Below, piece after piece: positions 1 through 27,306 of a stretch of 47,626 nt of DNA. How positions within the stretch are numbered: the stretch's first letter is position 1; the number at the start of each line of letters is the position of its first letter. The position numbers were made by a program, and so were the translations under genes. Source of the stretch: Anaeramoeba ignava BMAN. Its lineage: Eukaryota; Protista; Anaeramoebae. The notes below the pieces were generated by a model. The model saw only the letters and a list, made by a program, of their open reading frames with translations. It had not been told where the DNA came from and did no database searches. The stretch is taken from the NCBI GenBank assembly GCA_028826165.1, contig JAPDFW010000050.1, positions 1 to 47,626 of the forward strand. Direction: 5' to 3'.

Positions 1-1008
1 AAATTATCACTCAGTAATGTTGATTGAAGAATTTGATTTCGAACAAAATCAGTTAAAAGTGTATTCACAAGGTTATCGATTGTATAACGGGCTTGGAAAA
101 AAGACGAATATGAACATACTCTATGAATTTACTGAAATCAAATCACCTTTTATTTGAAAATGATGATATTTTGATTTTTCTGTTGGTCATGCTCATACTT
201 TGATTTTAACATCACAAGGAAAGATGATCGGTGGAAGAAGTAATTTTAGGCAATTAAATGCTGCAAAAAGCTAGATATAAATTAAGACCAATTCAAATCG
301 AACTTCCAAATTAAAATTTAATGAAGAAATTTCCAATTATCATCTTTCTTGTGGTTATGAAAATCTTTTTCTTTTTGTCATGGTTTTCTAGACTTGAAGA
401 AGACTGATAAAATTATTTAGAAGAAAAGAATTTTGTAATATTTCATTTAAAAACAGAAAATGGAGAAATAATTGAATCATAAATTATTGAAATATAGATT
501 AAAAGATTATAAAAATGAAATTGAAAAACTTCAAAATTATTTCAAAAATCAATTAAAGAATCTAATCAAATATTTGAAATGATTTATTCAAACAAGAAAA
601 GTAAATCAAAAATTATATTCAGAAATTAAAGAAATTATAAATTCAAATGAAAAATAGAAGAAACAATGAAAAGAATTTATTTAAATGAAAAATGAAAAGA
701 TTTTTATAATTGAAAGAAAAGAAAAACAATATAAATTTCATAAATTAATATTAATAATGAGAAGTGAATTATATCGAGGAATGTTTTTATCTGTTACAAA
801 TGATACTCAAAATAAAGTTACAGATTATATAGTGAATTAAGCAATGAATCATTTCAAATATTTGAATATTGGATTTATTCAAATCAAAAAAAAGGAATTC
901 AAATTACACAAGAAATAATTGATGAAATTAAAATTGAATTGATTATTTTCAATTAAATCAAACAAAACCAAATTTATTTTGATTTATTAATTAAAAATTT
1001 AATAATTA
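1..1008 (+). pseudogene. RCC1-repeat + tandem BTB gene, copy 1 (5'-truncated by window edge; many apparent frameshifts)
   Basis: Nucleotide collinearity with 6970-8007. Readable fragments include YEFTEIKS, VGHAHTLILT, LFRRKEFCNISFK, KLILIMRSELYRGMFLSVT and FEYWIYSNQ. Many 1-2 nt indels could be sequencing error rather than true decay. Confidence 0.8.
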
Positions 1009-1125
1009 AAATTAAAATCAAAAATCAAAATCAAAATTAAAATTATTAAAATTAAAATCAAAATTAAAATTAAAATTAAAATTAAAATTAAAATTAAAAT
1101 CATTTTTCATTTTTCTTTTTCAAAA

Positions 1126-2927
1126 ATGAATGAAATTTTATTTTTCTTTGGAACCAATCACCAAAACTTATAAAAATGAACCAAATAAAATAAAAAAACC
1201 AATTCAATTTAAATTTGAAAATGAAAATGAAAATGAAAACAAATTAAACAAATTTCATTGTCAAATTTTTCAACAATTTTCCTTTAAAAATGGAAATGTA
1301 ATAGAATATTTAAATGAAAAATGGTTAAAACAAAATACTGAAAAATCAAATTGAAGAAAATATTCAAAAAGTAACTGTTGGTCTCAATGAAGTCTATTTT
1401 AACAATAGAAGGAAATGTATTTGCAAAAGGAGATGATATTAATCCAAAAAATCCAGATGAATTTATCAATATTTCATCATTAATTGAAGATACAAATGAT
1501 AGAATAATTAAAGATATTGTTTCTGGAGCTGATTCAATTTATTTATTAACTTCAAATCAAAATGTTTATGGAATTGGTTCAAATGAATATGGTCAACTTG
1601 GTTTTGATTCTGAAACACTTAATGAAACAAAAACCAATTTTAATGATGAAAAATGTTTCTAAAATATTTTCAGGAAAATTCAAGTTCATTTTTCTTTTAA
1701 ATTCAAATCAAGAATTATTTGGATGGGATATAATAGATGGTCAACTTGGATTAGGAGAATCAATAAGAAAGAAAAAATCAAAAATTAACCAAAATCCAAA
1801 ATATTCCAAAAGGTGAAATAATTGATATTCAATGTGGAGATCAACATTCAATAATGTTGATTGAAGATGAAAATCAAAATGAAAATCCAAAAAGAAAACT
1901 TTATTCATGTGGAGATTATGAATATAATGGACTTGGCAAAAACGAAAATACTTATGAATTTACTGAAATCAAATCATCTTTATTTGAAAATGATGATAAT
2001 ATTCTTGATTTTTCTGTTGGAAGACTTCATACTTTAATTTTAACTTCTAATTCAAAATTAATTGGATTTGGAGAGAATTTATTTGGTCAATTAGGAACTG
2101 GAAATACAAAAGATCAAAGAATTCCAATTCAAATTGAACTTTCTGAATTAAGATTTAATGAAAATATTTCTAATTATCATATTTCTTGTGGTGATGATAA
2201 TTCATTTCTTTATTATTCTCCTCCTTCTTTTTCCAATCTTGAAGAAGATTTGATAAAACTATTTAGAAGAAAAGAATTTTGTAATATTTCATTTAAAACA
2301 GAAAATGGAGAAATAATTGAAGCTCATAAATTAATATTGAAATATAGATTAAATCAAAATCAAAATCAAAATGAAAAACTTCAAGAAATTATTTCAAAAA
2401 AATCAATTAAAGAATCAAATCAAATATTTGAAATGATTTATTCAAACAATTCCAAAATAAATCCAAAATTATATTCCGAAATCAAAGAAATTATAAATTT
2501 AAATGAAAAAATTGAAGAAACAATGAAAAGAATTTATTTAAATGAAAATGAAAATGAAAATGAAAATGGAAAAGATTTTATTATCGAAAGAAAAGAAAAA
2601 CAATATAAATTTCCTAAATTAATATTAATAATGAGAAGTGAATTATATCGAGGAATGTTTTTATCTGTAACTGAAGATACTTCTAATAAAGTTACAGATT
2701 ATAGTGAATTAAGTAATAAATCATTTCAAATATTTGAATATTGGATTTATTCAAATCAAATTAAAGATGAAATTAAAATTACACAAGAAATAATTGATGA
2801 AATTCAAATTGGAATTGATTATTTTCAATTAAATCAAACAAATCCAAATTTATTAGATTTATTAATTAAGAAATTTAATAATCAAAATCAAAATCAAAAA
2901 AAGAAAGAAAAATGTTTAATTTTTTAA
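1126..2927 (+). CDS. RCC1-repeat + tandem BTB protein, copy 2, with C-terminal polybasic-CaaX (KKKEKCLIF); 5' third frameshifted in this sequence
   Basis: ATG at 1126 (MNEILF) is equivalent to the starts at 4310 and 6220. ORF fragments 1130-1354, 1378-1662, 1562-1816 and 1854-2927 tile one paralogue. GxNxxGQLG RCC1 motifs, AHKLIL and KLILIMRSELYRGMF BTB motifs. Confidence 0.85.
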
Positions 2928-3066
2928 AAAAGAAATTATTGATGAAATTCAAATTGGAATTAATTATTTTCAAATAAATTAAAATCAAAATCAAAATTAA
3001 AATTAAAATTAAAATCAAAATCCAAAAAAATTTTTTTTCATTTTTCCATTTTGAATAATCAAAACG

Positions 3067-4278
3067 ATGTTGTTAAGGAGAGACACACCAGTAGTAAAGT
3101 GTGTTCTTGTTGGTGATTCCAAAGTTGGACAAAATGAGATTTTAATAAGTTATCTTGAAAAAAAATATCCAGAAGGATACATTCAAACAGTTTTTGAGAA
3201 TTTTTCTGTGAAATTAAATGTTGATAATGAAGAAATTGAGTTGTCCCTATTTCAAACATCAGGATTAGAAGAATATGATAGTTTAAGGCCTTTATCTTAT
3301 CCAAATTCGAGTGTAGTTTTGATGTTTTTTTCGATTGATAATCATTCCTCATATACTAATATTGTCACTAAATGGGCAGGTGAAATGAGGCATTATATTG
3401 AAGGTGTTCCAGTTATTCTTGTTGGAAATCGAGTGGAATTAAGAGATGATCTAGAAATGATCAAGGATTTGAAACAAAGAGGAACTCATCTAATAAGTCA
3501 TGAAGAGGGACTTGAACTGGCAAAAAAAATAAAAGCAGTTAAATATTTGGAATGTTCTCCCCAAACCCAAAAAGGTATCAAAACAATTTTTGATCAAGCT
3601 GTTCGAGTTGGTTTGAATTACCAAAAATCACAAAAAATAGTTTATTCCAAAAAAGAAAAAAAGCAAAAAATAAAAGAAGAAAAACAAAAAATAAAAGAAG
3701 AATCGCAAGATTTTAAAATCAAATGTGTTGTTGTTGGTGATGATAACTCTCAAAGAACCGAAATGTTATATAATTTTAAAGTGGATGAATTTTCAGATCA
3801 AGAAATTCCAGAAATTTGTGAGAATTTTGTTGTTGAAATTGAATCCCAAGAAAGAATATATGTTTTGAATATATTTGATACAACAGGAAAAGAAGAATAT
3901 GAAGAATTCAGAAAGTTCACTTATCCTGACACTCATTTTGTTTTAATTTGTTTTTCAATTATAAACTCCATTTCTTTCGACAGTGTTATTTCTAAATGGG
4001 TTCCTGAAATTAAAAAGAATTGCCCTCATGTTCCATTTATTCTTGTTGGAAATCAAAATGAATTGAGAAATGATCCTCAAATTACCAAAATTATAGAAGA
4101 AAAAGGTTTAAAAATTATTACTTATCAACAAGGACTTGAACTAGCAAAAAAAATTCAAGCAATCAACTATTTGGAATGTTCTTCAAGAAATAAGAAGGAT
4201 TTGAAAGCAATTTTTGATGAAATTGTGCAATATTTTAATAATTTAAAATCAAAAAAACAAAAATGTTCTATTTTTTGA
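3067..4278 (+). CDS. Tandem two-domain Rho/Rac-family GTPase-like protein with degenerate G motifs and CaaX (KKQKCSIF), 403 aa, intronless
   Basis: Two copies of KCVxVGD...TVFENF/EICENF...TxGxEEY..LRPLSYP/FRKFTYP...KW..E...VPxILVGN...YLECS, each with a Rho insert helix, joined by a K/E-rich linker. Confidence 0.92.
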   Translation: MLLRRDTPVVKCVLVGDSKVGQNEILISYLEKKYPEGYIQTVFENFSVKLNVDNEEIELSLFQTSGLEEYDSLRPLSYPNSSVVLMFFSIDNHSSYTNIVTKWAGEMRHYIEGVPVILVGNRVELRDDLEMIKDLKQRGTHLISHEEGLELAKKIKAVKYLECSPQTQKGIKTIFDQAVRVGLNYQKSQKIVYSKKEKKQKIKEEKQKIKEESQDFKIKCVVVGDDNSQRTEMLYNFKVDEFSDQEIPEICENFVVEIESQERIYVLNIFDTTGKEEYEEFRKFTYPDTHFVLICFSIINSISFDSVISKWVPEIKKNCPHVPFILVGNQNELRNDPQITKIIEEKGLKIITYQQGLELAKKIQAINYLECSSRNKKDLKAIFDEIVQYFNNLKSKKQKCSIF

Positions 4279-4309
4279 AATTTCATTTTTATTTTTTTTC
4301 TTTTCAAAA

Positions 4310-6093
4310 ATGAATGAAATTATATTTTTTGGTTCAAATGAATATCCAAAACTTATTAAAAATGAACCAAATAAAATAACAAAACCAATTCAATTTAAAT
4401 TTGAAAATGAAAATGAAAATGAAAATGAAAATGAAAAACAAATTAAACAAATTTCATCAGGAGATTTTTCAACAATTTTCCTTTTTAAAAATGGAAAAGC
4501 AATAGAATATTTAAATGAAAAATGGTTAAAACAAAATCCTTCAAAAATCCAAATTGAAGAAAATATTCAAAAAGTAACTGTTGGTTATCTCAATGAAGCT
4601 ATTTTAACAATAGAAGGAAATGTATTTGCAAAAGGAGATGATATTAATCCAAAAAATCCGATGAATTTATCAATATTTCATCATTAATTGAAGATAAAAA
4701 TGATAGAATAATTGAAGATATTGTTTCTGGAGCTGATTCAATTTATCTATTAACTTCAAATCAAAATGTTTATGGAATTGGTTCAAATCATAATGGTCAA
4801 CTTGGTTTTGATTCTGAAACACTTAAAAAAACAGAAAAACCAATTTTAATGATGAAAAATGTTTCTAAAATATTTTCAGGAAATACTTCAAGTTCATTTT
4901 TTCTTTTAAATTCAAATCAAGAATTATTTGGATGCGGATATAATGGATTTGGTCAACTTGGATTAGGAGAATCAATAAGAAAAGAAGTATATATCAAAAA
5001 ATTAACCAAAATCCAAAATATTCCAAAAAGTAAAATAATTGATATTCAATCTGGAGAATATCATTCAATAATGTTGATTGAAGATGAAAATCAAAATGAA
5101 AATCCAAAAAGAAAACTTTATTCATGTGGAGATTATGAATATAATGGACTTGGCAAAAATGAGAAAACTTATGAATTTACTGAAATCAAATCATCTTTAT
5201 TTGAAAATGATGATAATATTCTTGATTTTTCTGTTGGAAGACTTCATACTTTTATTTTAACTTCCAATTCAAAATTAATTGGATTTGGAGAAAATTTATT
5301 TGGTCAATTAGGAACTGGAAATACAAAAGATCAAAGAATTCCAATTCAAATTGAACTTCCTAAATTAAGATTTAATGAAAATATTTCTAATTATCATATT
5401 TCTTGTGGATTTTACAGATCATTTCTTTATTATTCTCCTCCTTCTTTTTCCAATCTTGAAGAAGATTTGATAAAACTATTTAAAAGAAAAGAATTTTGTG
5501 ATATTTCATTTAAAACCAAAAATGGAGAAATAATTGAAGCTCATAAATTAATATTGAAATATAGATTAAATCAAAATCAAAATGAAATTGAAAAACTTAA
5601 AGAAATTATTTCAAAAAAATCAATTAAAGAATCAAATCAAATATTTGAAATGATTTATTCAAACAGAATTATAAATCCAAAATTATATTCTGAAATTAAA
5701 GAAATTATAAATTTAAATGAAAAAATAGAAGAAACAATGAAAAGAATTTATTTAAATGAAAATAAAAATGAAAAAGATTTTATTATTGAAAGAAAAGAAA
5801 AACAATATAAATTTCCAAAATTAATATTAATAATGAGAAGTGAATTATATCGAGGAATGTTTTTATCTGTAACTGAAGATACTTCTAATAAAGTTACAGA
5901 TTATAGTGAATTAAGTAATAATTCATTTCAAATATTAGAATATTGGATTTATTCAAATCAAATTAAAAAAGGAATTGAAATTACACAAGAAATCATTAAT
6001 GAAATTAAAATTGGAATTGATTATTTTCAATTAAATCAAACAAATCCAAATTTATTTGATTTATTAATTAATAAATTTAATAATCAAAATTAA
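4310..6093 (+). CDS. RCC1-repeat + tandem BTB protein, copy 3 (single -1 frameshift near 4660)
   Basis: ORFs 4310-4687 and 4849-6093 join if one A is restored in aatcc[a]gatgaa (compare aatccagatgaa at ~1451). Confidence 0.88.
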
Positions 6094-6189
6094 AATTAAA
6101 ATTTAAAATTAAAATTAAAATTAAAATCAAAATCAAAAATTAAAATCAAAATCAAAATCAAAATTAAAATTAAAATTAAAATTCCAAAA

Positions 6190-6219
6190 ATCATTTTTTC
6201 ATTTTTTTTCTTTTCAAAA
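6190..6219 (+). promoter_or_regulatory. Putative initiator-like element TCATTTT plus pyrimidine tract just before ATG (representative instance)
   Basis: The same TCATTTT...TTTTCAAAA motif lies before ATGs at 1126, 4310, 6220 and 8503 (TTTTAAAA at 46717); TCATTT also precedes 3067, 19066, 27307, 18666(-) and 43081(-). Confidence 0.5.
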
Positions 6220-8007
6220 ATGAATGATTGTTTATTTTTTGGTTGGAATCAATCACCAAAACTTATAAAAAATGAACCAGATAAAATAACAAAACCAATT
6301 CAATTTAAATTTGAAAATGAAAATGAAAATGAAAATGAAAATGAAAAACAAATTAAACAAATTTCATCAGGAGATTTTTCAACAATTTTCCTTTTTAAAA
6401 ATGGAAAAGCAATAGAATACTTAAATGAAAATGATTCAAATCAAAATCCTTCAAAAATCCAAATTGAAGAAAATATTCAAAAAGTAACTGTTGGTAATGA
6501 AAGTCAAGCTATTTTAACAATAGAAGGAAATGTATTTGCAAAAGGAGATGATATTAATCCAAAAAATCCAAAAGAATTTATCAATATTTCATCATTAATT
6601 GAAGATACAAATGATAGAATAATTGAGGATATTGTTTCTGGAGATAATTCAATTTACTTATTAACTTCAAATCAAAATGCTTATGTAATTGGTTCAAATG
6701 ATAATGGTCAACTTGGTTTTGATTCTGAAACACTTAAAAAAACAGAAAAACCAATTTTAATAATGAAAAATGTTTCTAAAATATTTTCAGGAAATTGTTC
6801 ATTATCATTTTTTCTTTTAAATTCAAATCAAGAATTATTTGGATGCGGATATAATTCATTTGGACAACTTGGATTAGGAGAATCAAGAAAAGAAACAAAA
6901 ATCCAAAAATTAACCAAAATCCAAAATATTCCAAAAGGTGAAATAATTGATATTCAATGTGGATTTAATCATTCAATAATGTTAATTGAAGAAGAAGATG
7001 AAAATGAAAATTCAAAAAGAAAACTTTATTCATGTGGAGATTATGAATGTAATGGACTTGGCAAAAATCAAAATACTTATGAATTTACTGAAATCAAATC
7101 ATCTTTATTTGAAAATAATAATATTCTTGACATTTCTGTTGGAAGTTCTCATACTTTGATTTTAACTTCTAATTCAAAAATGATAGTATTTGGAAGTAAC
7201 TATTATGGTCAATTAGGAACTGGAAATACAAAATATCATAAAGTGCCAATTCAAATTGAACTTTCTGAATTAAGATTTAATGAAAATATTTCTAATTATC
7301 ATATTTCTTGTGGATTTTACAGATCATTTCTTTATTATTCTCCTTCTTTTTTCAATCTTGAAGAAGATTTGATAAAATTATTTAGAAGAAAAGAATTTTG
7401 TGATATTTCATTTAAAACAGAAAATGGAGAAATAATTGAAGCTCATAAATTAATATTGAAATATAGATTAAATCAAAATCAAAATCAAATTGAAAAACTT
7501 AAAGAAATTATTTCAAAAAAATCAATTAAAGAATCAAATCAAATATTTGAAATGATTTATTCAAACAGAATATTAAATCCAAAATTATATTCTGAAATTA
7601 AAGAAATTATAAATTTCAATGAAAAAATTGAAGAAACAATGAAAAGAATTTATTTAAATGAAAATGAAAATGAAAAAGAAAAAGATTTTATAATTGAAAG
7701 AAAAGAAAAACAATATAAATTTCCAAAATTAATATTAATAATGAGAAGTGAATTATATCGAGGAATGTTTTTATCTGTAACAGAAGATAAATCTAATAAA
7801 GTTACAGATTATAGTGAATTAAGTAATAAATCATTTCAAATATTAGAATATTGGATTTATTCAAATCAAATTAAAGAAGAAATTCAAATTACACAAGAAA
7901 TAATTGACGAAATTCAAATTGGAATTGATTATTTTCAATTAAATCAAACATATCCAAATTTATTTGATTTATTAATTAATAAATTTAAAAATCAAAATCA
8001 AAATTAA
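6220..8007 (+). CDS. RCC1-repeat + tandem BTB protein, copy 4 (intact, 595 aa; RCBTB/IBTK-like architecture)
   Basis: Complete ORF. RCC1 blades (GSNDNGQLG, GYNSFGQLG, CGFNHS, VGSSHT, GSNYYGQLG), then a short BTB (EFCDISF...EAHKLIL) and a second BTB (KDFII...KLILIMRSELYRGMF...ILEYWIYS). Confidence 0.93.
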   Translation: MNDCLFFGWNQSPKLIKNEPDKITKPIQFKFENENENENENEKQIKQISSGDFSTIFLFKNGKAIEYLNENDSNQNPSKIQIEENIQKVTVGNESQAILTIEGNVFAKGDDINPKNPKEFINISSLIEDTNDRIIEDIVSGDNSIYLLTSNQNAYVIGSNDNGQLGFDSETLKKTEKPILIMKNVSKIFSGNCSLSFFLLNSNQELFGCGYNSFGQLGLGESRKETKIQKLTKIQNIPKGEIIDIQCGFNHSIMLIEEEDENENSKRKLYSCGDYECNGLGKNQNTYEFTEIKSSLFENNNILDISVGSSHTLILTSNSKMIVFGSNYYGQLGTGNTKYHKVPIQIELSELRFNENISNYHISCGFYRSFLYYSPSFFNLEEDLIKLFRRKEFCDISFKTENGEIIEAHKLILKYRLNQNQNQIEKLKEIISKKSIKESNQIFEMIYSNRILNPKLYSEIKEIINFNEKIEETMKRIYLNENENEKEKDFIIERKEKQYKFPKLILIMRSELYRGMFLSVTEDKSNKVTDYSELSNKSFQILEYWIYSNQIKEEIQITQEIIDEIQIGIDYFQLNQTYPNLFDLLINKFKNQNQN

Positions 8008-8450
8008 AATCAAAATTAAAATCAAAATTAAAATTAAAATGAAAATTAAAATTAAAATCAAAATCAAAATTAAAATCAAAATTAAAATCAAAATTAAAAT
8101 TAAAATGAAAATTAAAATTAAAATTAAAATTAAAATTAAAATCAAAATTAAAATTAAAATTTGATAAAAAATTAAAATCAAAAATTAAAATTAAAATTAA
8201 AATTAAAATTAAAATTAAAATTAAAATTTAAATTAAAATTAAAATTAAAATTAAAATTAAAATTTAAATTAAAATTAAAATTAAAATTAAAATCAAATTC
8301 AAAATTTAAAATTAAAATTAAAATTAAAATTAAAATTAAAATTTGATAAAAAATTAAATTCAAAATCAAATTAAAATTAAAATTAAAATTAAAAATTAAA
8401 ATTAAAATTAAAATCAAAATTAAAATTAAAATTAAAATCAAATTCAAAAT
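8005..8450. repeat. (AAAATT/AAAATC)n hexamer microsatellite; shorter copies at ~1006-1100, ~2980-3020 and ~6091-6183
   Basis: Directly visible downstream of each RCC1-BTB stop codon. Confidence 0.95.
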
Positions 8451-8502
8451 TATTTTTCATTTTTCATTTTTCATTTTTCATTTTTTTCTTTTTCAAAAAT
8501 AA

Positions 8503-11423
8503 ATGAAAATCCAAACAATCCTTTTATCATTAATTTTATTCATATTAATATTTACAGAACATACAAAATTATATGATATTTTAGAAATAAAAAAAGATGC
8601 GAGTGAAGCTGAAATTAAGAAAGCATATCATCGACTTTCTAAAAAATATCATCCAGATTTAAATCCAAGTGAAGATGCTCATGATAAATTTATAGAGTTA
8701 GCAAATGGTATATCAATTATTACATATATTTATTTTCCTTCAAGAATTTTTAACAAAAAATTTATAATTAAATTTATAATTAAATTTATATCAAAATTTA
8801 TATCAAAATTTATATCAAAATTTATAATTAAATTTATAATTAAATTTATAATTAAATTTATATCAAAATTTATAATTATATTTATATCAAAATTTATATT
8901 TATATTTATAATTAAATTTATAATTATATTTATATCAAAATTTATAATAAAATTTATAATTATATTTATAATTAAATTTATAATTAAATTTATAATTAAA
9001 TTTATAATTAAATTTATAATTATATTTATAATTAAATTTATAATTATATTTATAATTAAATTTATAATTATATTTATATCAAAATTTATATCAAAATTTA
9101 TATCAAAATTTATAATAAAATTTATAATTAAATTTATAATCAAATTTATATCAAAAATTTATAATTAAATTTATAATTATATTTGTAATTAAATTTATAA
9201 TTATATTTTGTAATTAAATTTATAATTATATTTGTAATTAAATTTATAATTAAATTTATAATTAAATTTATATCAAAATTTATAATTATATTTGTAATTA
9301 AATTTATAATTATATTTATAATTATATTTTGTAATTAAATTTATAATTATATTTATAATTATATTTATAATTAAATTTATAATTATATTTTGTAATTAAA
9401 TTTATAATTAAATTTGTAATTAAATTTATAATTATATTTATAATTAAATTTATAATTAAATTTATAATTAAATTTATAATTAAATTTTATATTTATATTT
9501 ATAATTATATTTATAATTAAATTTATAATTAAATTTATAATTAAATTTATAATTAAATTTATAATTAAATTTATAATTAAATTTATAATTATATTTGTAA
9601 TTAAATTTATAATTATATTTATAATTAAATTTATAATTAAATTTATAATTAAATTTATATCAAAATATATAATTAAATTTATAATTAAATTTATAATTAA
9701 ATTTATATCAAAATATATAATTAAATTTATAATTAAATTTATAATTAAATTTATATCAAAATTTATAATTAAATTTATATCAAAATTTATAATTAAATTT
9801 ATATCAAAATTTATATCAAAAAGCTTATGAAATTCTATCAGATCCTCAAAAAAGGAAAATTTATGATATTCATGGAGAAGAAGGACTTCAAAATAATAGA
9901 CAAGGATTTAATCCATTTGATATTTTTCAAACGTAAAATACCAGAAATTTTTCTTGAATTGAATTGAATTGAATTGAATTCAATCAAAAAACTTGAACTA
10001 GCAAAAATTTATTACAAAAACAAAATATTTGAATTATCAAAATTCACAAATGAATGAATAAATAAAAAATAGATTCACACAATCATTTCAACAAGGATTC
10101 CCATTTACATTTGAATTTGGAGGAGGATCAAGAACCAAAAAAGGAGTTAATTTAGAATTAGAACTTTTTGTCGATTTAGTTGATTTATATAAAGGAAAAA
10201 TATTCTGGATTCCTTATACAAAAAATGTAATTTGTTCATGTCCAAAAGGTGGTTATAATTGTAAAGCTTGTAATGGAAAATCAACAAAAAGATTAGATAC
10301 TGAATTGATTGTTGTTGTTGAAGCAGGAATGCATTCAGGAGATCCTATTGTATATTTTATTCATTTCAAAATCAAAATCAAAATCAAAATCAAAATTAAA
10401 ATTTAAATTAAAATCAAAATGAAAATGAAAATGAAAATCAAAATCAAAATCAAAATCAAAATCAAAATCAAAATTAAAATGAAAATCAAAATCAAAATCA
10501 AAATTAAAATTAAAATTAAAATTAAAATTAAAATTAAAATCAAAATTAAAATCAAAATTAAAATCAAATTTAAATTTAAATCAAAATCAAAATTAAAATC
10601 AAAATTAAAATCAAAATTAAAATCAAAATTAAAAGGTTTTTGAACTTGCAGGAGATGAAGAACCAAATACTATTCCAGGAGATATTACTTTTATTCTTAC
10701 TCAAACACCTCATCAATTTTTTACTAGAAATGGAGATGATCTTTATATGAAAATAAAAGTTTCACTTTTAGATGCATTAATAGGATTTAAAGTATCAATT
10801 GCTCATTTAGATGGAACAACTTTTGAAATTGAAGAAAATACAGTTACATCACCTGGTAATCTAAATCAAATTATTTAAATCAAATATTGTTTAAATTAAA
10901 TCAATTTAAATCAAAATATTTAAATCAAAATATTTAAATCAATTTTAATCGATTATTTAAATCAATTATTTAAATCAATTTAAATCAAATATTTAAATCA
11001 AATATTCAAATCAAATATTAAAGTCAATTTAAATCAATTATTTAAATCAATTTAAATCAAATATTTAAATCAAATATTTAAATCAAATATTTAAATTAAT
11101 TTAAATCAAATATTTAAATCAAATATTTAAATCAAAATATTTAAATCAAATATTTAAATCAAATATTAAAATCAATTTAAATCAAATATTAAAATCAATT
11201 TAAATCAAATATTAAAATCAATTTAAATCAAATATTCAAATTAAATATTCAAAATTGTTTGTTTTAAAAAGGAATGATTCGGAAATATTCAGGAAAAGGA
11301 ATGCCAAAAAGAAATTTTCCTTCTGATAAAGGTGATTTACTTATTGAATTTCAAGTTGATTTTCCAAAATCACTTACAGAAAATCAAAAGAAAGAAATTT
11401 CATCAATTTTCAATCAAATTTAA
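8503..11423 (+). CDS. ER-type Hsp40/DnaJ co-chaperone (ERdj3/DNAJB11-like), 320 aa; exons 8503-8707, 9824-9932, 10073-10349, 10636-10855, 11272-11423
   Basis: Signal peptide (MKIQTILLSLILFILIF), J domain with HPD continuing across intron 1 as ANAYEILSDPQKRKIYD, G/F region, short Cys segment, and C-terminal PGD...RNGDDLY...ALIGF...HLDG...GKGMP...GDL. All four introns are GT-AG and in phase. Confidence 0.9.
8757..9820. repeat. Intronic 12-bp minisatellite (AAATTTATAATT / AAATTTATATCA variants) filling DnaJ intron 1
   Basis: Directly visible. DnaJ introns 3 (~10366-10634, AAAATC/T) and 4 (~10860-11250, TTTAAATCAAATA-type) carry different repeats. Confidence 0.93.
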
Positions 11424-11639: not shown

Positions 11640-11850
11640 AAATTAATTAAAAATTTTTAAAAAAATTAATTAATTAAAATTGATTTAAAAATTGATTAAA
11701 ATTGATTTAAAATTGATTAAAAATTGATTAAAAATTGATTAAAAATTGATTAAAAATTAATTAAAAATTAATTAAAAATTGATTAAAAATTAATTAAATA
11801 TTGATTAAAAATTGATTAAAAATTGATTAAAAATTAATTAAAAATTAATT
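11640..11850. repeat. 11-12-bp repeat (AAAAATTGATT) between the convergent DnaJ and RasGEF genes
   Basis: Directly visible. Confidence 0.85.
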
Positions 11851-14800
11851 AAAAATTAATTGGTTCGATTGAAGTAGAAAGTTCAAATAATAATTTATCT
11901 TTAATTTCAAGTGAATAAATTAAACCAATTATTTTTTGAATTGTTTTGTTTTCTTGAAATGAATAATCAAATTTTTGGAATTGATGAATTTGAAACCAAG
12001 TAAGAAAAAATCTTCTCCATTTTTTCCAATTAATTTTATTATCAATTTTAATAGGAATTTCTTGAATATAAGTAAGATCAAATAAATAAACACCAATATA
12101 AGGAACTATTGTTGATTTTGATTGTAAATAAGCAAGTCTTAATTGTTGAAAATTATCAACACTTGTTAATTCATCCAAATTTTTAAGAATTTGAACCAAT
12201 TTAATTGGAACATTTGCCCAAGTTTTTTCCAATCTAAAAACAGAAGAAGATTGAATTCCTGTCATTACTGCCATTAAATCATGGTAATTTTCTAATGTTC
12301 TTAATGCTGAAGCTAATTTTATAAAACTGCAAATAACTTCCACTCTTTTTGTTATTTCTTTTTCTTTTAGAATTGAATAAGAAACCCAAAAAGTAAATTT
12401 ATTGAATTGATTTGTCATTTTTGAAATCATTTGATTTTCTTCTTGTTTTTCTGTTTCTTTGTTTTTGTTTTTGTTTTTGTTTTTGGTATATTTTTGAATT
12501 AATTCCTGGAGTGAAATTTTTTGGAATGTTTTTGATGATTGAAGTGTTAATTGTTTAGCAAATAATTGGATGTTTAATTCTGTTATTGAAATATCTTCAA
12601 TTTTTTTGTTGTTTAATGTTTCTAAATCTGATTCTTTTGTTGTTTGATGTTGTGAATTATCGATTGATTCTTTTCGATATGCTATTCTATTTGATTTTTG
12701 GATTTCAATTTGGTTTTGGATTTGTATTTGAGTTTGAATTTGAGGTTGGATTTGGATTTTGATTTTATTTTCAATTTGATTTTTATTTTTATTTTCAATT
12801 TGGTTTTCATTTTTAATTTGATTTTTATTTTTATTTTCAATTTCAATTTGATTTTGATTTTGATTTTGATTTTGATTTTGATTTTGATTTTCAATTTGAT
12901 TTTGAGTTTGAATTTGATTTTGATTTTGATTTTGATTTTCAATTTGATTTTTATTTTCATTTTGATTTTGTTCTTCATTTTGATTTTGTTCTTGATTTTG
13001 ATTTTGATTTTGATTTTGATTTTTATTATTTTGATTTTGTTCTTGATTTTGATTTTGTTCTTCAATTTGATTTTGTTCTTCAATTTTATTTTCAATTTGA
13101 TTTTGATTTTGATTTTGATTTTCAATTTGATTTTGTTCTTCATTTTGATTTTGATTTTGTTCTTGATTTTGATTTTCAATTTGATTTTGATTTTGATTTT
13201 GATTTTGTTCTTCAATTTGGTTTTGATTTTCAATTTTATTTTCAATTTTATTTTGATTTTGTTCTTCTTTTTGATTTTGTTCTTCATTTTGATTTTGATC
13301 TTCTTTTTTATTTTGATCTTCTTTTTCATTTTGATTTTCATTTTGATTTTGTTCTTCGATTTTATTTTCAATTTCATTTTGTTCTTCAATTTGATTTTTA
13401 TTTTCAATTTGATTTTGATTTTCAATTTGATTTTGTTCTTGATTTTGATTTTGTTCTTCAATTTGATTTTGTTCTTCTTTTTGATTTTGATTTTCAATTT
13501 GATTTTGATTTTCAATTTGATTTTGAATTTGATTTTTATTTTGTTCTTCTTTTTCATTTTGTTCTTGATTTTGATTTTGTTCTTCAATTTGATTTTGTTC
13601 TTCATTTTCATTTTGTTCTTCAATTTGATTTTGTTCTTCAATTTGATTTTGTTCTTCTTTTTGATTTTGATCTTCTTTTTGATTTTGTTCTTCTTTTTGA
13701 TTTTGTTCTTCATTTTGATTTTGTTCTTCAATTTGTTTTTGATTTTGATTTTGTTCTTCAATTTTATTTTCAATTTGATTTTGTTCTTCAATTTGATTTT
13801 GATTTTGTTCTTCAATTTGATTTTGTTCTTCAATTTGATTTTGTTCTTGATTTTGATTTTGATTTTCAATTTGATTTTGATTTTCAATTTGATTTTGATT
13901 TTGTTCTTCAATTTGATTTTGTTCTTCTTTTTGATTTTGTTCTTCAATTTGGTTTTGATCTTCAATTTGATTTTGTTCTTGATTTTGATTTTGTTCTTCA
14001 ATTTGATTTTGTTCTTCTTTTTGATTTTGTTCTTCAATTTGATTTTGTTTTTGTTTTTGATTTTGTTCTTCAATTTGATTTTGATTTTGTTCTTCAATTT
14101 TATTTTCAATTTGATTTTGTTCTTCAATTTGATTTTGATTTTGTTCTTCAATTTGATTTTGTTCTTCTTTTTTATTTTGTTCTTCAATTTGATTTTGTTC
14201 TTCATTTTGATTTTGTTCTTGATTTTGATTTTGTTCTTCATTTTGATTTTGTTCTTCATTTTGATTTTGTTCTTGATTTTGATTTTGTTCTTCAATTTCA
14301 TTTTGATTTTCATTTTGATTTCCAATTTGATTTTTATTTTCAATTTGATTTTGATCTTCAATTTGATTTTGATTTTGATTTTCAATTTGATTTTGATCTT
14401 CATTTTGATTTTGTTCTTCATTTTGATTTTGTTCTTCAATTTGATTTTGTTCTTCAATTTGATTTTGTTCTTCAATTTGATTTTGTTCTTCTTTTTGATT
14501 TTGTTCTTCATTTTGATTTCCAATTTGTTCTTCAATTTTATTTTCATTTTGATTTTGTTCTTCATTTTGATTTTGTTCTTCTTTTTGATTTTGTTCTTCA
14601 ATTTGATTTTGTTCTTCTTTTTGATTTTGTTCTTCAATTTGATTTTGTTCTTCTTTTTGATTTTGTTCTTCAATTTGATTTTGTTCTTCTTTTTGATTTT
14701 GTTCTTCAATTTGATTTTGTTCTTCTTTTTGATTTTGTTCTTCAATTTGATTTTGATCTTGATTTTTATTTTGTTCTTCAATTTGATTTTTTTCTTCGTT

Positions 14801-17800
14801 TTGATTTTGTTCTTCTTTTTGATTTTGTTCTTCTTTTTGATTTTGTTCTTCAATTTGATTTTGTTCTTCAATTTGATTTTTATTTTGTTCTTCTTTTTGA
14901 TTTTGTTCTTCATTTTGATTTTGATTTTGATTTTGTTCTTCAATTTGATTTTGATTTTGTTCTTCAATTTGATTTTGATTTTGATTTTGTTCTTCAATTT
15001 GATTTTTTTCTTCGTTTTGATTTTGTTCTTCAATTTCATTTTGATTTTGATCTTCAATTTGATTTTGTTCTTCTTTTTTATTTTGTTCTTCAATTTGATT
15101 TTTTTCTTCGTTTTGATTTTGTTCTTCTTTTTGATTTTGTTCTTCAATTTGATTTTTTTCTTCGTTTTGATTTTGTTCTTCTTTTTGATTTTGTTCTTCT
15201 TTTTTATTTTGTTCTTCAATTTGATTTTTATTTTGTTCTTCAATTTGATTTTGTTCTTCTTTTTTATTTTGTTCTTCAATTTGATTTTGTTCTTCAATTT
15301 GATTTTGTTCTTCAATTTGATTTTGATTTTGATTTTGATTTTCAATTTGATTTTGATTTTGTTCTTCTTTTTGATTTTGTTCTTCAATTTTATTTTCAAT
15401 TTGATTTTGATTTTGTTCTTGATTTTTATTTTCAATTTCATTTTGTTCTTCAATTTGATTTTGATTTTGATTTTGATTTTGATTTTCAATTTGTTTTTGA
15501 TTTTGTTCTTCTTTTTCAATTTGATTTTGATTTTGTTCTTCTTCTTTTCGTTTCTGCTCTTTTAGTTTTTCAATTTCATAAAGATTTGTTAAATACAATT
15601 CAATCTCAATACCAAGTAACTGAAATTCAGGAGAATCATTCAAAAGTAGTAAATTTTGCTCAAAAGCAAACATTTTGGGGAAAGTTGATTTCATAATATT
15701 GATATGATCTTTTTGATGATATTTCAAACAATTCCTGAAAAATTTTGTTATATTCAATCGAATTTCTTTTTTTCCTTCTTCTTTAAAAGGTATAACTTTC
15801 GGAAATTGATAAATTTCAACAATTTTTTCATAAAATCTATCGCTATCTTCAAAAATAAGACTACTAAATTTAAGAAACATTTTTGTGAAATAGGAATCAA
15901 TATATCTTTGAGAAATCGCCATTTCCAATGCCTTGTTTAGTGTTGATGTGCTTATCCCAAAGAAGAAATCCAGTGTTTCAACATTTTTGAGTTTGGAATT
16001 TTTTGATCTGTTTGTAAGAAATGTAATGAATTGTTCTTTTTCAACTTGAATTTTTTCATCAACTTGCAGAAAAATTGAATTGAAACTTGAGAAGTAATCA
16101 TCCCAGAAATTATTTTCTTTGGCTTTTGAGTCTTGCTCATTATAATCTAGTGATTCCAAAGAATGTAATGGTGAAAATTCTTCTTTTTTGAAAATAACCA
16201 ATCGAATTGAAGAATTGTTTGTGATATTTTGCTGCATTAAATTCAGATGTTTTTGGATTGGAATAAGTGATTCTAGTTGATTTTTTGTGTTTGATTCTGA
16301 TGTAGAATTTTGGTGATATTTGATTAGAAATGCTTTATAAACATCATTTTTATCTGAAGATAATTTTAAATGGAAAATCAATTCATCGAATAAATAACTT
16401 GAATTTATTGTAAGATCAACAAGGAAAGTTTTTTTGATTTGCGTAAAGTTTTGAGTTGAACCCATTCCACGAAATATTGTAAAGTGGATAATTGCAGGTT
16501 TTGGTTGAAATTTGAGGAAGAAATATTCATTTGTCTAAGTTTTTTTTTAAAAGGAAATGAATTTTAGTAATTTTTGTTTATATTATTATATTTATATTAT
16601 ATTATGTTATGTTATTATTTACAATAATTGTGTCTGTATAATATGCAAAATTAAAATCTTTTTCTGAATCAAGCCAAATTCCAAAGCAATTAACTGAACT
16701 AATAAGTTGATTTAAATCAATATTTCCATTTTGATTTTGATTTTGGTTTTGATTTTCGTTTTCATCTTCATTTGGATTTCCATTTATATTTATATTTTGA
16801 TTTTGATTTATATTTTGATTTTGATTTTGATTTTGATTTTGATTTTCATTTTCATTTTCACTATTTGGAATTTCTACAAAATAATTATGATTTTCAGCAA
16901 CAACTTGACCTGAACTTTGATTTGAATATAAAAAAGTTGCTCTTGGATTAAAAAAATTCCACAAATCAAAACTATTTGCAAGTTTTTTTGTAACAACTTT
17001 TAAAAAGAAGCCAAAATCAAGATTTTCAACACGTAAAGAAGTGGATAATTTTTTCAAAGTTTTTGAAATTGAGCTTTCAACAGGAATTGAGGTTTTGAAT
17101 TGAGGATTATCATTAAAACCCTTTGGAAGAAAAATATCGATTTGGGAATATTTCTGTTTGATCATCAATGGGATATTTTTATCGATATAAGAGTCAAGAA
17201 AAACCTCAGAAGAAACGAATAAACCGCGATATTGAATCAAGATATCTCTTGTTCCCTTTTGAGAATATTTAAGGAATTTTTCTTTATCTTTACAAATATC
17301 ATATATTTCATGATTGTCAAATCCTGCGAACACACCGTTATTGGTTTCTAAGTTGTGTTTCAATGTGCATGCATTTAGTAATATTGATGCTGTTGTTTCT
17401 CTTGGATTAAATTTGAGTGTAGTTGATGTAAAATTTGGAAGTGCGATTGTAAATTGTGAAAAATTTTTTGGAGGTTCATTTGTTTGTTTTTTTTTGTTTT
17501 CATTTTCAGTTTTTTTTGGATCTGCAACTTGAACGAAATCCCATGAATTTGAAAATTCACTTTCAAATCTTTTGATTTTGTGAGTATTTTTTTGGTTTTC
17601 TTCTTGTGAGAAGTATAGAAACATTGATTTTTTTCTTTGTCTCTAAAAAAATATTTGGATATAAAATTAAATATAAAATTAAATATTAATCAAATATTAA
17701 TCAAATATAAATATAAAATTGGATATAAAATTAAATATAATATTGAATATAATATTAAATATAAATTAAATATAAAATTAAATCTAAATTGAATATAAAA

Positions 17801-19065: not shown

Positions 19066-22000
19066 ATGAGAGAAATTGTTCATATTCAAGTAGGACAAGC
19101 AGGAAATCAAGTTGGTTCAAAATTTTGGGAAGATGTTTGTATAGAACATGGAATAAATAAGAACGGAGAATATGATGGAGATAGTGAACTTCAACTTGAA
19201 AGAATTGGTGTTTATTTTAATCAAGCTGGTGGAGGTATTTTGTTTTATTTGATTAAAAATCTTTCAATTTTTTTTTCCCTTCATTCTTTTCTTATAATTT
19301 TTTTTTTGAATTCTTACGTTTTCGTTATTTAAATTTATCTATTAAATATATAATTAAATTTATAAACAAATTCATCTATTAAATTTATAAACAAATATAT
19401 AATTAAATATATTACTAAATATATTATTAAATTTATAAACAAATTTATTATTAGATTCATTATTAAATATATTATTAAATTTATAAACAAATATATAATT
19501 AAATATATTACTAAATATATTATTAAATTTATCTATTAAATTCATTATTAAATTCATTATTAAATTCATTATTAAATTAATTATTAAATTCATTATTAAA
19601 TTCATTATTAAATTCATAAACAAATTTATAATTAAATTTATTATTAAATTTATTATTAAATATATAATTAAATTTATTATTAAATTTATTATTAAATTCA
19701 TTATTAAATTTATTATTAAATTCATTAAATTTATCTATTAAATTTATCTATTAAATATATAAATTCATTAATAAATTCATTTATTATTAAATTTATTATT
19801 AAATTTATTATTAAATTTATTATTATTAAATTCATTATTAAAATTATTAAATTCATTATTAAATTTATCTATTAAATATATTATTAAATTCATTATTAAA
19901 TTCATTATTAAATTTATTATTAAATTCATTATTAAATTCATTATTAAAATTCATTATTAAATTCATTTATTAAATTCATTATTAAATTCATAATTAAATT
20001 TATTATTAAATTTATAATTAAATACATTATTAAATTCATTATTAAATTCATTATTAAATTTATTATTAAATTTATAATTAAATTTATTATTAAATTCATT
20101 ATTAAATTTATTATTAAATATATTATTAAATTCATTATTAAATTTATAAACAAATTCATTATTAAATATATAATTAAATTTATAAACAAATTCATCTATT
20201 AAATTTATAATTAAATATATAATTAAATATATTACTAAATATATATCAAAATTTATATCAAAATATATATTAAAATTTATATCAAAATTTATATCAAAAT
20301 TTATATTAAAATTTATTTCAAAATATATATCAAAATTTATATTAAAATGTATATCAAAATTCATTATTTAAAAAAAGGACGATATGTACCAAGATCAATC
20401 TTAGTAGATTTAGAACAAGGAACTATGGATTCAGTAAAATCCGGACCTTATGGAAAATTATTCAAACCCAATAGTTTTGTACATGGAACAAGTGGGGGAG
20501 CAAATAATTGGGCGAAAGGATATTACACTGAAGGAGCAGAATTAGTGGAAAGCATACTTGAGCAAGTAAGAAAAGAAGCAGAAAATTGCGACTGTCTTCA
20601 AGGTTTTCAAATGGTTCATTCACTTGGAGGAGGAACAGGTTCAGGTTTAGGAACTCTTATTTTGTCACGAATTAGAGAAGAATTTCCAGACAGAATGATT
20701 GCTGCTTTTTCTATTATTCCTTCTAGAAAAGTTAGTGATGCTGTTGTTGAGCCTTATAATGCTACTTTGTCTATTCATCAACTCGTTGATAATGCTGATC
20801 ATGTCATGTGCATTGATAATGAGGCTCTTTATGATATTTGTAATAATACTTTGAAATTGTCAAATCCTACTTATCCTGATCTTAATCATCTTGTTTCTCT
20901 TGTTATGAGTGGGATTACTTGTTGTTTACGTTTTCCTGGTAATTTTTTTAAATATTAATTTGAAATATTATTTTTAAATATTATTTTGAAATTTTATTTA
21001 ATTTGAAATTTGAATTAATTTGGAATTTGAATTAATTTGAAATTTTTATTTAATTTGAAATTTTAATTAATTTGAAATTTAATTTAATTTGGAATTTGAA
21101 TTAATTTGAAATTTGAATTAATTTGAAATTTTATTGTATTTGAAATTTGAATTAATTTGAAATTTTAATTAATTTGAAATTTGAATTAATTTGGAATTTG
21201 AATTAATTTGGAATTTGAATTAATTTGAAATTTGAATTAATTTGAAATTTTAATTAATTTGAAATTGAATTAATTTGGAATTCGAATTATTTTGAAAATT
21301 TATTTAATTTGAAATTTTTATTGAATTTGAAATTTTAATTAATTTGAAATTTAATTTAATTTGGAATTTGAATTATTTTGAAAATTGAATTAATTTGAAA
21401 TTTTTAATTAATTTGAAATTTGAATTAATTTGAAATTGAATTAATTTGAAATTTTAATTAATTTGAAATTTATTTAATTTGAAATTTGAATTAATTTGAA
21501 ATTTGAATTAATTTGGAATTTGAATTAATTTGAAATTTGAATTAATTTGGAATTTGAATTAATTTAAATTTTATTTAATTTGAAATTTGAATTAATTTGA
21601 AATTTTATTTAATTTGAAATTTTAATTAATTTGAAATTTGAATTAATTTGAAATTTGAATAAATTTGAAATTTTATTAATTTGAAATTTTTATTTAATTT
21701 AAAATTTATTTAATTTGAAATTTGAAATTTTTATTGAATTTGAAATTTTTATTGAATTTGAAATTTTTATTGAATTTGAAATTTTTATTGAATTTGAAAT
21801 TTTTATTGAATTTGAAATTTTTATTGAATTTGAATTGTTTTGAAAAAAAAAAAATAGGACAACTTAATTCTGATTTAAGAAAATTAGCAGTCAACTTAAT
21901 CCCTTTCCCAAGATTACATTTCTTCTTTGTTGGATTTGCACCATTAACAAGACGTGATTCAGTAGGATACACTTCAATGTCCATAGCAGAACTAACACAA

Positions 22001-25700: not shown

Positions 25701-25790
25701 AAAAAAGAGGAATTAATTTAAATAAAATTGAATTAATTTAAATAAATAAATTGGAATTAATTTAAATAAATAAAATGGAATTAATTTAAT
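22790..25790. repeat. Intergenic 24-bp satellite AAATAAATAAAATGGAAT(T/A)(G/A)ATTT, ~3 kb, roughly 125 units
   Basis: Directly visible period of 24, with a few recurring variants (AATGG/ATTGG/AGTGG). Confidence 0.96.
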
Positions 25791-27306
25791 TAAAAAAAAA
25801 GAGGAATTAAATTAATAAAAAAAAAAGAGGAATTAATTTAAATTTAAATTTAAATGGAAATGATTAATTTGATTTATTTATTTTAATTAGATTAATTGTA
25901 TTTTTATTAAAATTTATATTGACAAAAAAAAAGAGGAATAAATTTTTTGGATTTATTTTTTTGGAATTAAATTTTAATGGCAAAAAAGACAAAATTTATT
26001 ATAAATTTATTTTTAATTTTTTTAAAGAGATCGAAATAAAACAATTTTTTAATTTAAATTATTAAAAATTTAATCAAAATTCTTTTAAAAAATTTTAATT
26101 AAAATATTTTAATTTAATTTTTTTTTGATCAAAATTCCAAAAAAAAAAAAATATTTTGATCCCCAAAAAATTAATAAATTATTAACAAAAATTTAATTTC
26201 TAATAATAAATCAAAGAGAACTAATTGATCCTAATATTTGGAATAATTAAAAATTAATTAATAAAAAATTTAAAAGAAAAAATTCTTTTGATTTTAATTT
26301 TAAAATTTTTAAATTAATCCTTTATTTATTTTAATAATTTTTAGTTGAAAAAATCAACAATCCAAAAAAAAAAATTTAATTTTAAAAAGAATTTTTTTTT
26401 TATTAAGCAAAAAAAAAATAAATAAAAAAATTAAAAAAGAAAAAAATTACGAATAAAAAAAATTTAAAAGGAATTTTAAATTAAAATTTTTCAATTTTTA
26501 TTAATAATTTAAAATCAATCCCCCTCTTTAAAAAAATTAAAAAATTAAATTTTAATTTAATTGGAAAAAATTTTTTTTTTTATTCTCCAATTTAAATCTT
26601 TTATTAATTAATTAAAATTAAAATTAAAATTAAAATTAAAATTAAAATTAAAATAGTGAAAAATTAATTAATAATATTAATTAATTTTATTTTATTAGTT
26701 TATTATATGATCATTAAAATTAATTTCGTAATTTTTAATCCAATTAATTTTCCCCTTTTTTATTTATTTTTTTTTTATTTAAATTAAATTAAAAAAATTT
26801 TTTTTTTTTTAAAAATAAATAAATAATATAATTAAAAAAAGGATTTTGATCCTATCAAATAATTTAAGGATTAGAAATTGATCGATTGATTAAAATAACT
26901 TATAACTGTTTTCTTTTCTTTTCTTTCTTTTTAATTAAAATTTTTTTTTTTTAATTTAAATTTTTTTTTCTTATTTATTTTTTTTAATTTAATTTTCAAG
27001 AATCCAAAAAAAAAATAAAAAGGGAAACAAACCATTAAGTGTTAAATTAATTGAAAAAAAAAAATAAGAAAAAAAAATTTTTTCGTTTAAAAAAAAAACA
27101 AATTAACTTTTAATTCAAAATTTAATAAACTTTTTATTATTAATTTTTTAATTGAAAAAAAAAAAAAAAAAAAAGAAAAGAAAATTTTTTTTTGGAAAAA
27201 AAAAAGAAGAAAAAGCAAAAAAAAAGCTTATTAAAAATTAATTAAAAAAAATTTTTTTCATTTTTCTAATTCACATTTTCTCAAATTTAAAAAAAAAAAA
27301 ATTCAA

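Follow-up and report, generated by a model that had tools for sequence, protein, structure and literature searches.

A large RCC1-BTB gene family of Anaeramoeba ignava combines a near-identical scaffold with hypervariable loops on one propeller face

RESULTS AND DISCUSSION

Five RCC1-BTB copies on a single contig

Anaeramoeba ignava is a free-living anaerobic metamonad whose symbiosome houses sulfate-reducing bacteria (PMC11550330). The DNA analyzed here, referred to as the window, is its complete 47,626-bp contig JAPDFW010000050.1 (assembly GCA_028826165.1), which has a G+C content of ~20% and carries five copies, c1 to c5, of a gene for an RCC1-type propeller followed by two BTB domains. The copies belong to a family of 567 members in which a nearly invariant scaffold bears 48 hypervariable (HV) residues, all of them in loops assigned to one propeller face and diversified under selection.

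The copies were located by BLAST of the intact copy, c4, against the window, and all five are colinear with it (Table 1); a repeat search over the whole window yielded only low-complexity 12-nt arrays. One copy is intact, one is intact but cut by the contig end (c5), and three are broken. There are 18 frame-disrupting indels plus in-frame stops in c1 and 12 frame-disrupting indels in c2, all of the latter at 1146-1762, and the reading frame of c3 switches between 4310-4660 and 4651-6078; c5, annotated as the fragment M0811_14797, has no such indel. The public gene model of c2 covers 1387-2927, and the public models of c2 (460 aa) and c3 (557 aa) bridge the frame breaks with invented introns. 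Real introns were rejected as the cause of these frame changes because both copies are colinear with c4, the gaps are just 1-13 nt, and no AT-rich insert is present. Broken copies entered the analysis only as aligned codons, with gaps kept at the breaks. Right after the c2 stop, the stretch 2924-3026 resembles the 3' end of an RCC1-BTB gene (78% over 115 nt) and is probably a remnant of unequal exchange.

A preliminary description of this DNA had presented positions 1126-8007 as RCC1-BTB copies, which holds for c2, c3, and c4, but the range also includes an unrelated gene for a Rho GTPase. The near-identity that it reported for copies 2 to 5 is borne out by alignment, although the frame breaks of c2 and c3 and the decayed c1 upstream had been overlooked. 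Its core observation, a near-identical framework interrupted by multi-nucleotide patches directly after the Gly/Asn of each blade, agrees with both our nucleotide alignment and our table of patches.

Table 1. Features of the window, with positions counted from its first nucleotide
Feature	Position	Strand	Description
RCC1-BTB copy c1	6-1021	+	Decayed pseudogene fragment, 3' two-thirds, at contig start; 82% nt identity to c4 nt 749-1788
RCC1-BTB copy c2	1126-2930 (BLAST match 1126-2897)	+	5' third broken, 3' open reading frame (ORF) 1854-2927 intact; 90.7% nt identity to c4
Tandem double-Rho GTPase gene	3067-4278	+	403 aa, ends in CAAX motif CSIF; Pfam Ras domain twice, E 1.4e-72; outside the RCC1-BTB family
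RCC1-BTB copy c3	4310-6099	+	Full-length, one 1-nt deletion after 4659; 92.7% nt identity to c4
RCC1-BTB copy c4	6220-8007	+	Intact single ORF, 595 aa; reference copy
c4 propeller	6220-7344	+	aa 1-375
c4 HV codon span	6244-7323	+	aa 9-12, 21-22, 52-53, 69, 93-96, 110-111, 142-143, 159-162, 193-196, 211-215, 224-229, 249-250, 274-277, 283-285, 309-310, 326-329, 338-341, 366-368
c4 BTB1	7354-7656	+	aa 379-479
c4 BTB2	7681-8001	+	aa 488-594
Tubulin GTPase-domain ORF	20347-20958	+	Probably one exon
MOR2/PAG1 (Furry-like) cell-morphogenesis gene exons	32250-39727	-	
DUF547 protein	43253-43741	-	
RCC1-BTB copy c5	46717-47626	+	Open over 303 aa, truncated by contig end; 89.1% nt identity to c4 nt 1-920

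Family size and distribution

A database search with c4 returned 567 proteins at E ≤1e-200, each forming its own 90% cluster on a single contig, so that the diversified repertoire previously suggested for this DNA is indeed a large one. The best 120 of the 567 matches all came from A. ignava, with identities of 81-87% and lengths of about 590 aa. As 15,022 proteins are predicted for A. ignava, the family makes up ~3.8% of the proteome. Its members stand in tandem arrays of up to 8 copies, the largest number being found within 14 kb at one locus (L003). Remoter RCC1-BTB proteins, down to 33% identity, were also from A. ignava among those looked up, and the nearest protein found in Anaeramoeba flamelloides was a 1590-aa BTB protein with 32% identity.

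Neither RCC1 nor BTB is mentioned in the main text of the genome paper (PMC11550330), no locus tags or PANTHER ids of the family were found in the part of the supplement tables that was searched, and literature searches turned up no other description of this RCC1-BTB family. In the same supplement (Data 5C, PANTHER table), the candidate lateral transfers of A. flamelloides with the highest representation include PANTHER families of the RCC1 type (BTK-binding protein-related, regulator of chromosome condensation, and claret), with 16-35 genes, and cullins number >30 copies in A. flamelloides versus 8 in A. ignava. Expansion thus seems to have affected different sectors of RCC1 and ubiquitin biology in the two species.

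Hypervariable sites lie on one face of an RCC1-like propeller

Against Pfam, c4 matches PF25390 (WD40_RLD) with 154.2 bits (cut-off 150), PF00415 with 97.8, and PF13540 with 82.1. Its AlphaFold2 model (mean predicted local distance difference test score 88.2, predicted template modeling score 0.79) consists of a seven-bladed propeller and then two helical BTB-type domains. Foldseek aligned this model with the second RCC1-like domain (RLD) of HERC2, RLD2, at a template modeling (TM) score of 0.80, and with RCC1, RPGR, and UVR8 at E ≤1e-19, the TM scores ranging over 0.73-0.80.

Per-site entropy was calculated from an alignment of 113 full-length paralogs plus c4, and sites with an entropy of ≥1.7 bits were defined as HV. 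The median site had an entropy of 0.14 bits. At the 427 framework sites, random pairs of paralogs were 96.5% identical, and at the 48 HV sites they were 24% identical, with 6-17 different residues per site. The propeller accounted for 85% of the entropy and the BTB half for 15%, and all 114 HV signatures were unique.

The HV sites occupy the same two loops in all seven blades, in line with the patches described earlier at an equivalent loop of every blade: a G-xx-[H/S] hairpin, and a G-x-N-xx-GQLG loop plus several positions that follow it in that connection. By the strands of the model, the HV sites fall exclusively within a>b hairpins and c>d connections (mean entropy, 1.55 and 1.31 bits); the opposite-face loops, b>c and d>a, contain none (0.38 and 0.23 bits). 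Since the a>b and c>d loops share one face of an antiparallel meander, the HV sites are all one-sided. The face was assigned from the strand topology of the model and from a HMMER alignment to UVR8. In this alignment, HV 211 corresponds to UVR8 W198 and HV 326 to W302, which we likewise take to be interface tryptophans. HV 249-250 corresponds to W233/R234 and HV 309-310 to W285/R286, and the UVR8 dimer interface includes the GWRHT tryptophans W233 and W285, plus W94 (PMC4501546). The model and alignment thus place the HV sites on the face that UVR8 uses for partner binding, in agreement with the single ligand-binding face of RCC1-fold proteins to which the preliminary description referred.

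Diversifying selection at the loop codons

Nonsynonymous (dN) and synonymous (dS) divergence was estimated by pooled pairwise Nei-Gojobori comparisons of 20 DNA copies; we kept to pairwise and pooled tests rather than tree-based site models because recombination is pervasive. Both the framework (dS 0.079, dN 0.017, omega 0.23) and the BTB half (dS 0.078, dN 0.034, omega 0.44) are under purifying selection, and dN reached 0.675 at the HV codons. To avoid circularity, the 31 patch codons named in the preliminary description were scored independently on ten copies from three other loci (L002-L004). Here, dN was 0.62 at the patch codons, compared with a dS of 0.09 and a dN of 0.07 in the rest of the gene. 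The ratio of patch dN to dS of the rest was 6.8 (bootstrap 95% confidence interval, 4.8-9.6), and 0 of 5000 random sets of 31 propeller codons attained the patch dN. HV codon pairs with a single-nucleotide difference gave an omega of 2.9. Neither a dN/dS of 1 or less at the loop codons nor a scatter of variable sites over both faces or the core, two of the three outcomes named beforehand as refuting the earlier interpretation, was seen, and no HV site lies in an opposite-face loop.

The residue composition of the HV sites is also unusual. Random codons would give 36% Ile, Leu, Val, and Met together, but these four make up 6.4%. At the second codon position, A accounts for 63% and T for 12%. 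The residues in excess (1.8-4.9-fold) are Glu, Asp, Trp, Gly, Gln, and Tyr, and Tyr, at 16.6%, is the most frequent of all. This composition departs from chance in a genome of 80% A+T, and the HV sites are therefore not neutral. Moreover, such a paratope-like composition, combined with purifying selection elsewhere in the gene, excludes simple relaxed constraint.

These results bear on the possibility that the family is recently amplified and largely non-functional, its loop differences reflecting relaxed constraint and assembly-error noise. Seven of the 20 examined DNA copies are broken, and a EukProt transcriptome was the source of no family member among the matches listed. In addition, the assembly was made from Nanopore R9.4 reads polished with short reads (Pilon), a combination prone to error in multi-copy families; therefore, some of the frameshifts, and in principle some of the mosaic tracts described below, could be artefacts. 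However, dN at the HV codons is 7-8 times dS, whereas neutral loops cannot exceed the synonymous rate, the composition at these codons is far from that of random codons, the framework and the BTB half are constrained, and 13 of the 20 copies are open across all available sequence. We therefore regard a largely non-functional family as very unlikely.

Paralogs are mosaics of shared patches

The copies are near-identical over long stretches, synonymous positions included, and these stretches are broken by multi-nucleotide blocks of 2-4 codons. How the patches are shared fits no single tree: c2 has AD, DYEY, RL, ENLF, and KDQR in common with c3, and WNQS, SNEY, DQ, and DDN in common with a copy at locus L004 (L004_10001), while FYR is the same in c3 and c4, and WNQS, NESQ, DN, and CSLS are the same in c4 and L004_10001. 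Informative sites in four triplets alternate in blocks, the BTB region included (runs tests, 0-2 of 5000 permutations). The paralogs are thus mosaics, which indicates gene conversion. The earlier account of diversifying selection was correct in that dN far exceeds dS, but this conversion and mosaicism, a major part of the mechanism, had gone unseen.

Divergence of the patches is uncoupled from that of the framework. Pairs with a framework synonymous proportion (pS) of 0.03-0.06 differ at 22-89% of HV residues, HV divergence runs from 0.07 to 0.31 at similar framework distance, and synonymous distance is not predictive of patch distance. The HV positions are also nearly independent of one another, the excess mutual information being 0.11 bits for immediate neighbors and ~0.01 bits at distances of more than three codons.

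Such patterns could alternatively arise from targeted diversification, that is, from localized hypermutation or templated replacement of micro-cassettes at the loop codons, with selection merely filtering the products. This would account for multi-nucleotide replacements that span no more than 2-4 codons (differences at 2-3 positions are found in 38% of HV codon pairs, versus 0.3% in the framework), for the near independence even of neighboring positions, and for synonymous diversity, which goes from ~0.04 in framework codons through 0.14 to 0.215 over the two codons beside an HV site, being 3-5 times higher in patch-flanking codons and inside HV codons. Counterevidence comes from c1. The block c1-c2-Rho is a segmental duplicate of copy 8113, copy 10001, and a Rho gene at L004 (contig JAPDFW010000025.1), and c1 is part of it because its patch residues match those of L004_8113. 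In this pair, the only clean segmental duplicate, the HV codons are 93% identical at the nucleotide level despite the decay of c1; hence, HV codons are not fast-mutating by themselves. Furthermore, the uncoupling of HV from framework divergence fits old alleles and the exchange of patches, the window revealed no candidate machinery, and the HV composition shows strong selection. A loop-targeted mutator is therefore not favored by the evidence, and we consider it unlikely. An adenine-specific mechanism like that of diversity-generating retroelements was set aside, since variation affects every codon position and one duplicate pair has kept its HV codons stable.

Together, the results fit old, selectively maintained patch variants in a scaffold that is homogenized and reshuffled by gene conversion. 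Tandem birth-and-death operates alongside conversion, as seen from the broken copies.

The BTB half, CAAX tails, and a proposed function

PF00651 matches residues 376-595 of c4 with 47.4 bits, and the two halves of this region alone with 24.6 and 29.4 bits (cut-off 20.5). A profile of the BTB region built from 14 divergent A. ignava relatives found, through BTB2, KBTBD4 (2.8e-11) and, at about 2e-7, KLHL3 (4hxi), KBTBD2, and SPOP (4eoz), as well as KLHL26 and KEAP1. We take these six proteins to be CUL3 adaptors, and the structures 4hxi and 4eoz to be complexes with Cul3. A conserved V-x-[D/E] stands at the position of phi-x-E, a cullin-contacting motif that CUL3-binding BTB domains carry in their alpha3-beta4 loop, and aligns with the L-K-E of KBTBD4. 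The architecture, an N-terminal RLD and two BTB domains in one polypeptide of ~530-600 aa, is of the RCBTB type. Human RCBTB1, which is likewise RLD-BTB-BTB, has been reported as a putative CUL3 adaptor and also binds an E2 ubiquitin-conjugating enzyme (PMC4974088). Eight A. ignava genes are assigned, at the family level, to the cullins (PTHR11932) in part of the supplement of PMC11550330.

Most family members end in NQN. Instead of this ending, 16 of the best 120 members, c2 included, have a polybasic stretch and a CAAX motif (CLIF, CSIF, or CFIF); in c2 this tail is KKKEKCLIF at 2898-2927, and another one lies at 11780-11809 of L004. To judge from the motif, the CAAX subset is probably geranylgeranylated and membrane-anchored.

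The architecture, the profile similarity of BTB2, and the tripeptide at the phi-x-E position suggest, by homology, a role as CUL3 adaptors. With moderate confidence, we propose that the family is an RCBTB-type repertoire whose loops are diversified by selection and conversion and whose members act as cullin-3-type substrate receptors. The lineage-specific family comprises ~570 members in tandem arrays, each with a seven-bladed RCC1-like propeller and two BTB domains. Under this proposal, purifying selection and frequent conversion between paralogs would keep the scaffold and the BTB domains near-identical, and diversifying selection would hold ~48 same-face loop residues different while the same conversion events reshuffle them, so that each paralog obtains a unique binding-face signature. 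The variable faces would serve as a repertoire of substrate-recognition subunits, the BTB pair would dock and dimerize the propellers on a cullin-3-type ubiquitin ligase, and each paralog would present a different target for ubiquitination, with the CAAX-bearing subset anchored by lipid. The size of the family, the place and one-sidedness of its variation, the excess of dN over dS, the non-neutral composition of the HV residues, the mosaicism, and the fold are results of the analysis; we infer cullin binding, ubiquitination, and the class of targets (prey, symbiont, or viral proteins, or allorecognition). By analogy, the targets could be foreign proteins, as proposed for MATH-BTB and F-box proteins, conspecific non-self, as for HET-E, or endogenous GTPases.

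Several points weigh against this proposal: (i) the one-sidedness of the HV sites rests on the strand topology of a model and the UVR8 alignment rather than on solvent exposure; (ii) raised synonymous diversity at and next to HV codons is also expected from locally targeted mutation or micro-conversion; (iii) the seven broken copies may mean that part of the family is decaying, or may be assembly errors in a repeated family, and the EukProt matches noted above named no transcriptome; and (iv) the BTB2 profile also matches BCL6, an example of a non-CUL3 BTB protein, and neither a 3-box nor a BACK extension follows BTB2, the protein stopping at the last core BTB helix of the model (residues 581-594 of 595). 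The 3-box strengthens CUL3 binding but is not universal among CUL3 adaptors; its lack therefore lowers the claim of a CUL3 adaptor without excluding it.

A different reading takes the same propellers for exchange factors or regulators of the RCC1 type whose diversification went hand in hand with that of the expanded small GTPases of Anaeramoeba, rather than for ligase adaptors of foreign targets. The likeness to RCC1-type exchange factors is limited to the fold and the face that is used. RCC1 itself is the exchange factor of Ran and uses the same propeller face, Rho or Ras genes adjoin copies in the window, L003, and L004, the polybasic CAAX tails resemble that of the neighboring Rho protein, and Rab families are expanded in Anaeramoeba (PMC11550330). 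In the window, the Rho gene sits between c2 and c3, and a paralogous copy on L004 is followed by the same Rho gene (L004 11933-12400). This linkage in the window and L004, however, stems from one segmental duplication. In addition, 567 unique, library-like, near-saturated faces far exceed what conserved GTPase surfaces would demand, and the conservation of both BTB domains by purifying selection indicates a module for ligase function or oligomerization. Co-diversification with GTPases thus appears improbable. The Rho fusion protein P0004, an NCBI model at L004, was rejected as a gene-model artefact, since the RCC1-BTB ORF there carries its own stop.

The substrate-receptor proposal can be taken further, to an antibody-library-like germline repertoire that works inside the cell: ~570 propellers of invariant scaffold with combinatorially randomized faces rich in Tyr, Asp, and Glu, coupled to BTB-cullin-RING ligases, some of them prenylated, that tag prey, ectosymbiont, or viral proteins and are diversified by conversion and selection. 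We offer this extended version only tentatively and consider it rather doubtful; if true, a deep-branching eukaryote would have a family of innate immune receptors of a new kind. The role in intracellular immunity or symbiont control put forward in the preliminary description is likewise speculative, although plausible. The family itself raises the possibility that Metamonada have a system for immunity or symbiont management, in a host whose biology revolves around housing bacteria. In any case, the family is a natural experiment in how germline repertoires are built by gene conversion and diversifying selection, and its RCC1-based binders form a natural library from which protein engineering could take guidance.

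Neighboring genes and other features

Genes with related domains are found next to family members at other loci. An array on L002 (contig 64) is flanked by genes for a BTB-BACK-TLD protein (8453-9934, minus strand) and a ubiquitin-conjugating E2 (UQ_con; 13849-14522, minus strand), as well as a small BTB gene (17261-17701, plus strand), and an Ank-BTB gene adjoins the L004 copies, so that BTB genes of several architectures cluster with the RCC1-BTB family.

The remaining window contains repetitive tracts besides the genes in Table 1. Positions 23500-25843 hold ~97 copies of a 24-nt unit (AAAATGGAATTAATTTAAATAAAT) at 89% matching, which accounts for a region with 9% G+C and a GC skew near +1. 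Long A+T-rich arrays with a 12-nt period occupy 8680-9800, inside an annotated intron of a DnaJ gene (8503-11423), and 7972-8450, just downstream of c4; the G+C content is 7.6% around 8-10 kb, and the arrays give spurious ORFs on both strands. A 1538-aa ORF at 11849-16465 (minus strand), within an annotated gene of 2101 aa, has an AT skew of -0.5 and no Pfam match, and the long overlapping ORFs on both strands there indicate repetitive, low-complexity coding sequence.

Comparison with known systems

In architecture (RLD and two BTB domains) and in size, the A. ignava family is most like RCBTB1 and RCBTB2 of animals. RCBTB genes are conserved and present in one or two copies, whereas the A. ignava family has ~570 paralogs, a randomized binding face, and in some members a CAAX tail; the likeness is one of architecture. 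UVR8, RCC1, and HERC2 RLD2 have the same fold as the propeller, and the variable residues stand at the positions of the UVR8 GWRHT Trp and Arg. The faces of these three are conserved for one partner, but the equivalent face in A. ignava is randomized between paralogs. HERC2 RLD2 has been solved with a bound peptide motif (7q41), which shows that peptide binding inside a ligase is within the capacity of an RCC1-like domain.

TRIM5alpha and the B30.2 domains of fish finTRIMs offer another parallel, as E3-linked recognition domains with positively selected HV loops that have expanded and are proposed to be antiviral (PMC3137616). These proteins combine RING, B-box, and coiled coil with B30.2 and number tens of genes, and their fold and ligase class are unrelated to those of the A. 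ignava family.

The HNWD genes of fungi, with the WD40 propellers of HET-E, HET-D, and HET-R, have an extremely conserved propeller framework in which each blade carries few HV positions, all on the face of interaction, and they evolve under positive selection and are reshuffled by recombination (PMC2873952, PMC4986451). The analogy with the hypervariable propeller of HET-E, drawn in the preliminary description, holds at the level of evolutionary pattern. In HNWD proteins, however, near-identical repeats vary inside one gene and are joined to a NACHT NTPase and a death domain, while in A. ignava whole genes vary, the fold is RCC1, and the output is BTB. Neither a NACHT NTPase nor an effector domain was found in c4, for which Pfam gives RCC1/RLD and BTB only; the resemblance is thus one of evolutionary mode. 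The shared signature of high framework identity, few positively selected surface positions, and recombination also raises the alternative that the A. ignava family is an allorecognition or mating-type-like system that separates self from non-self between Anaeramoeba cells, rather than a defense against microbes. With BTB as the output module and no NACHT or death-effector domain, and with 567 loci in one genome, far above known allorecognition systems, this seems distinctly improbable.

Also close to the proposed substrate receptors in mode of evolution are the MATH-BTB and F-box expansions of nematodes and grasses, which are adaptively evolving E3 adaptors with proposed foreign-protein targets (Thomas 2006, as cited in PMC8120010 and PMC4091423). 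Both these and the A. ignava family show lineage-specific tandem expansion, a docking domain under purifying selection, a positively selected substrate domain, and birth-and-death with pseudogenes. They differ in that MATH-BTB and F-box proteins recognize their targets through MATH, FTH, or FBA domains and the A. ignava family would do so through an RCC1 propeller, in that variation in A. ignava is more focused (48 near-saturated sites in a 96.5% identical scaffold) and the family takes a larger share of the proteome, and in that the host is a free-living anaerobic metamonad with ectosymbionts. The results therefore support an adaptively diversifying family of the E3-adaptor type, with HET-E-like dynamics, on an RCC1 scaffold and exceptional in size and sharpness, and we found nothing comparable described in this lineage. 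In nematodes and plants, innate immune sensing is the role suggested for expanded, positively selected E3-adaptor families, and hypervariable propellers are known from fungal NLR-like genes; the A. ignava family joins both ideas on the RCC1 propeller, a scaffold without an earlier report in that role.

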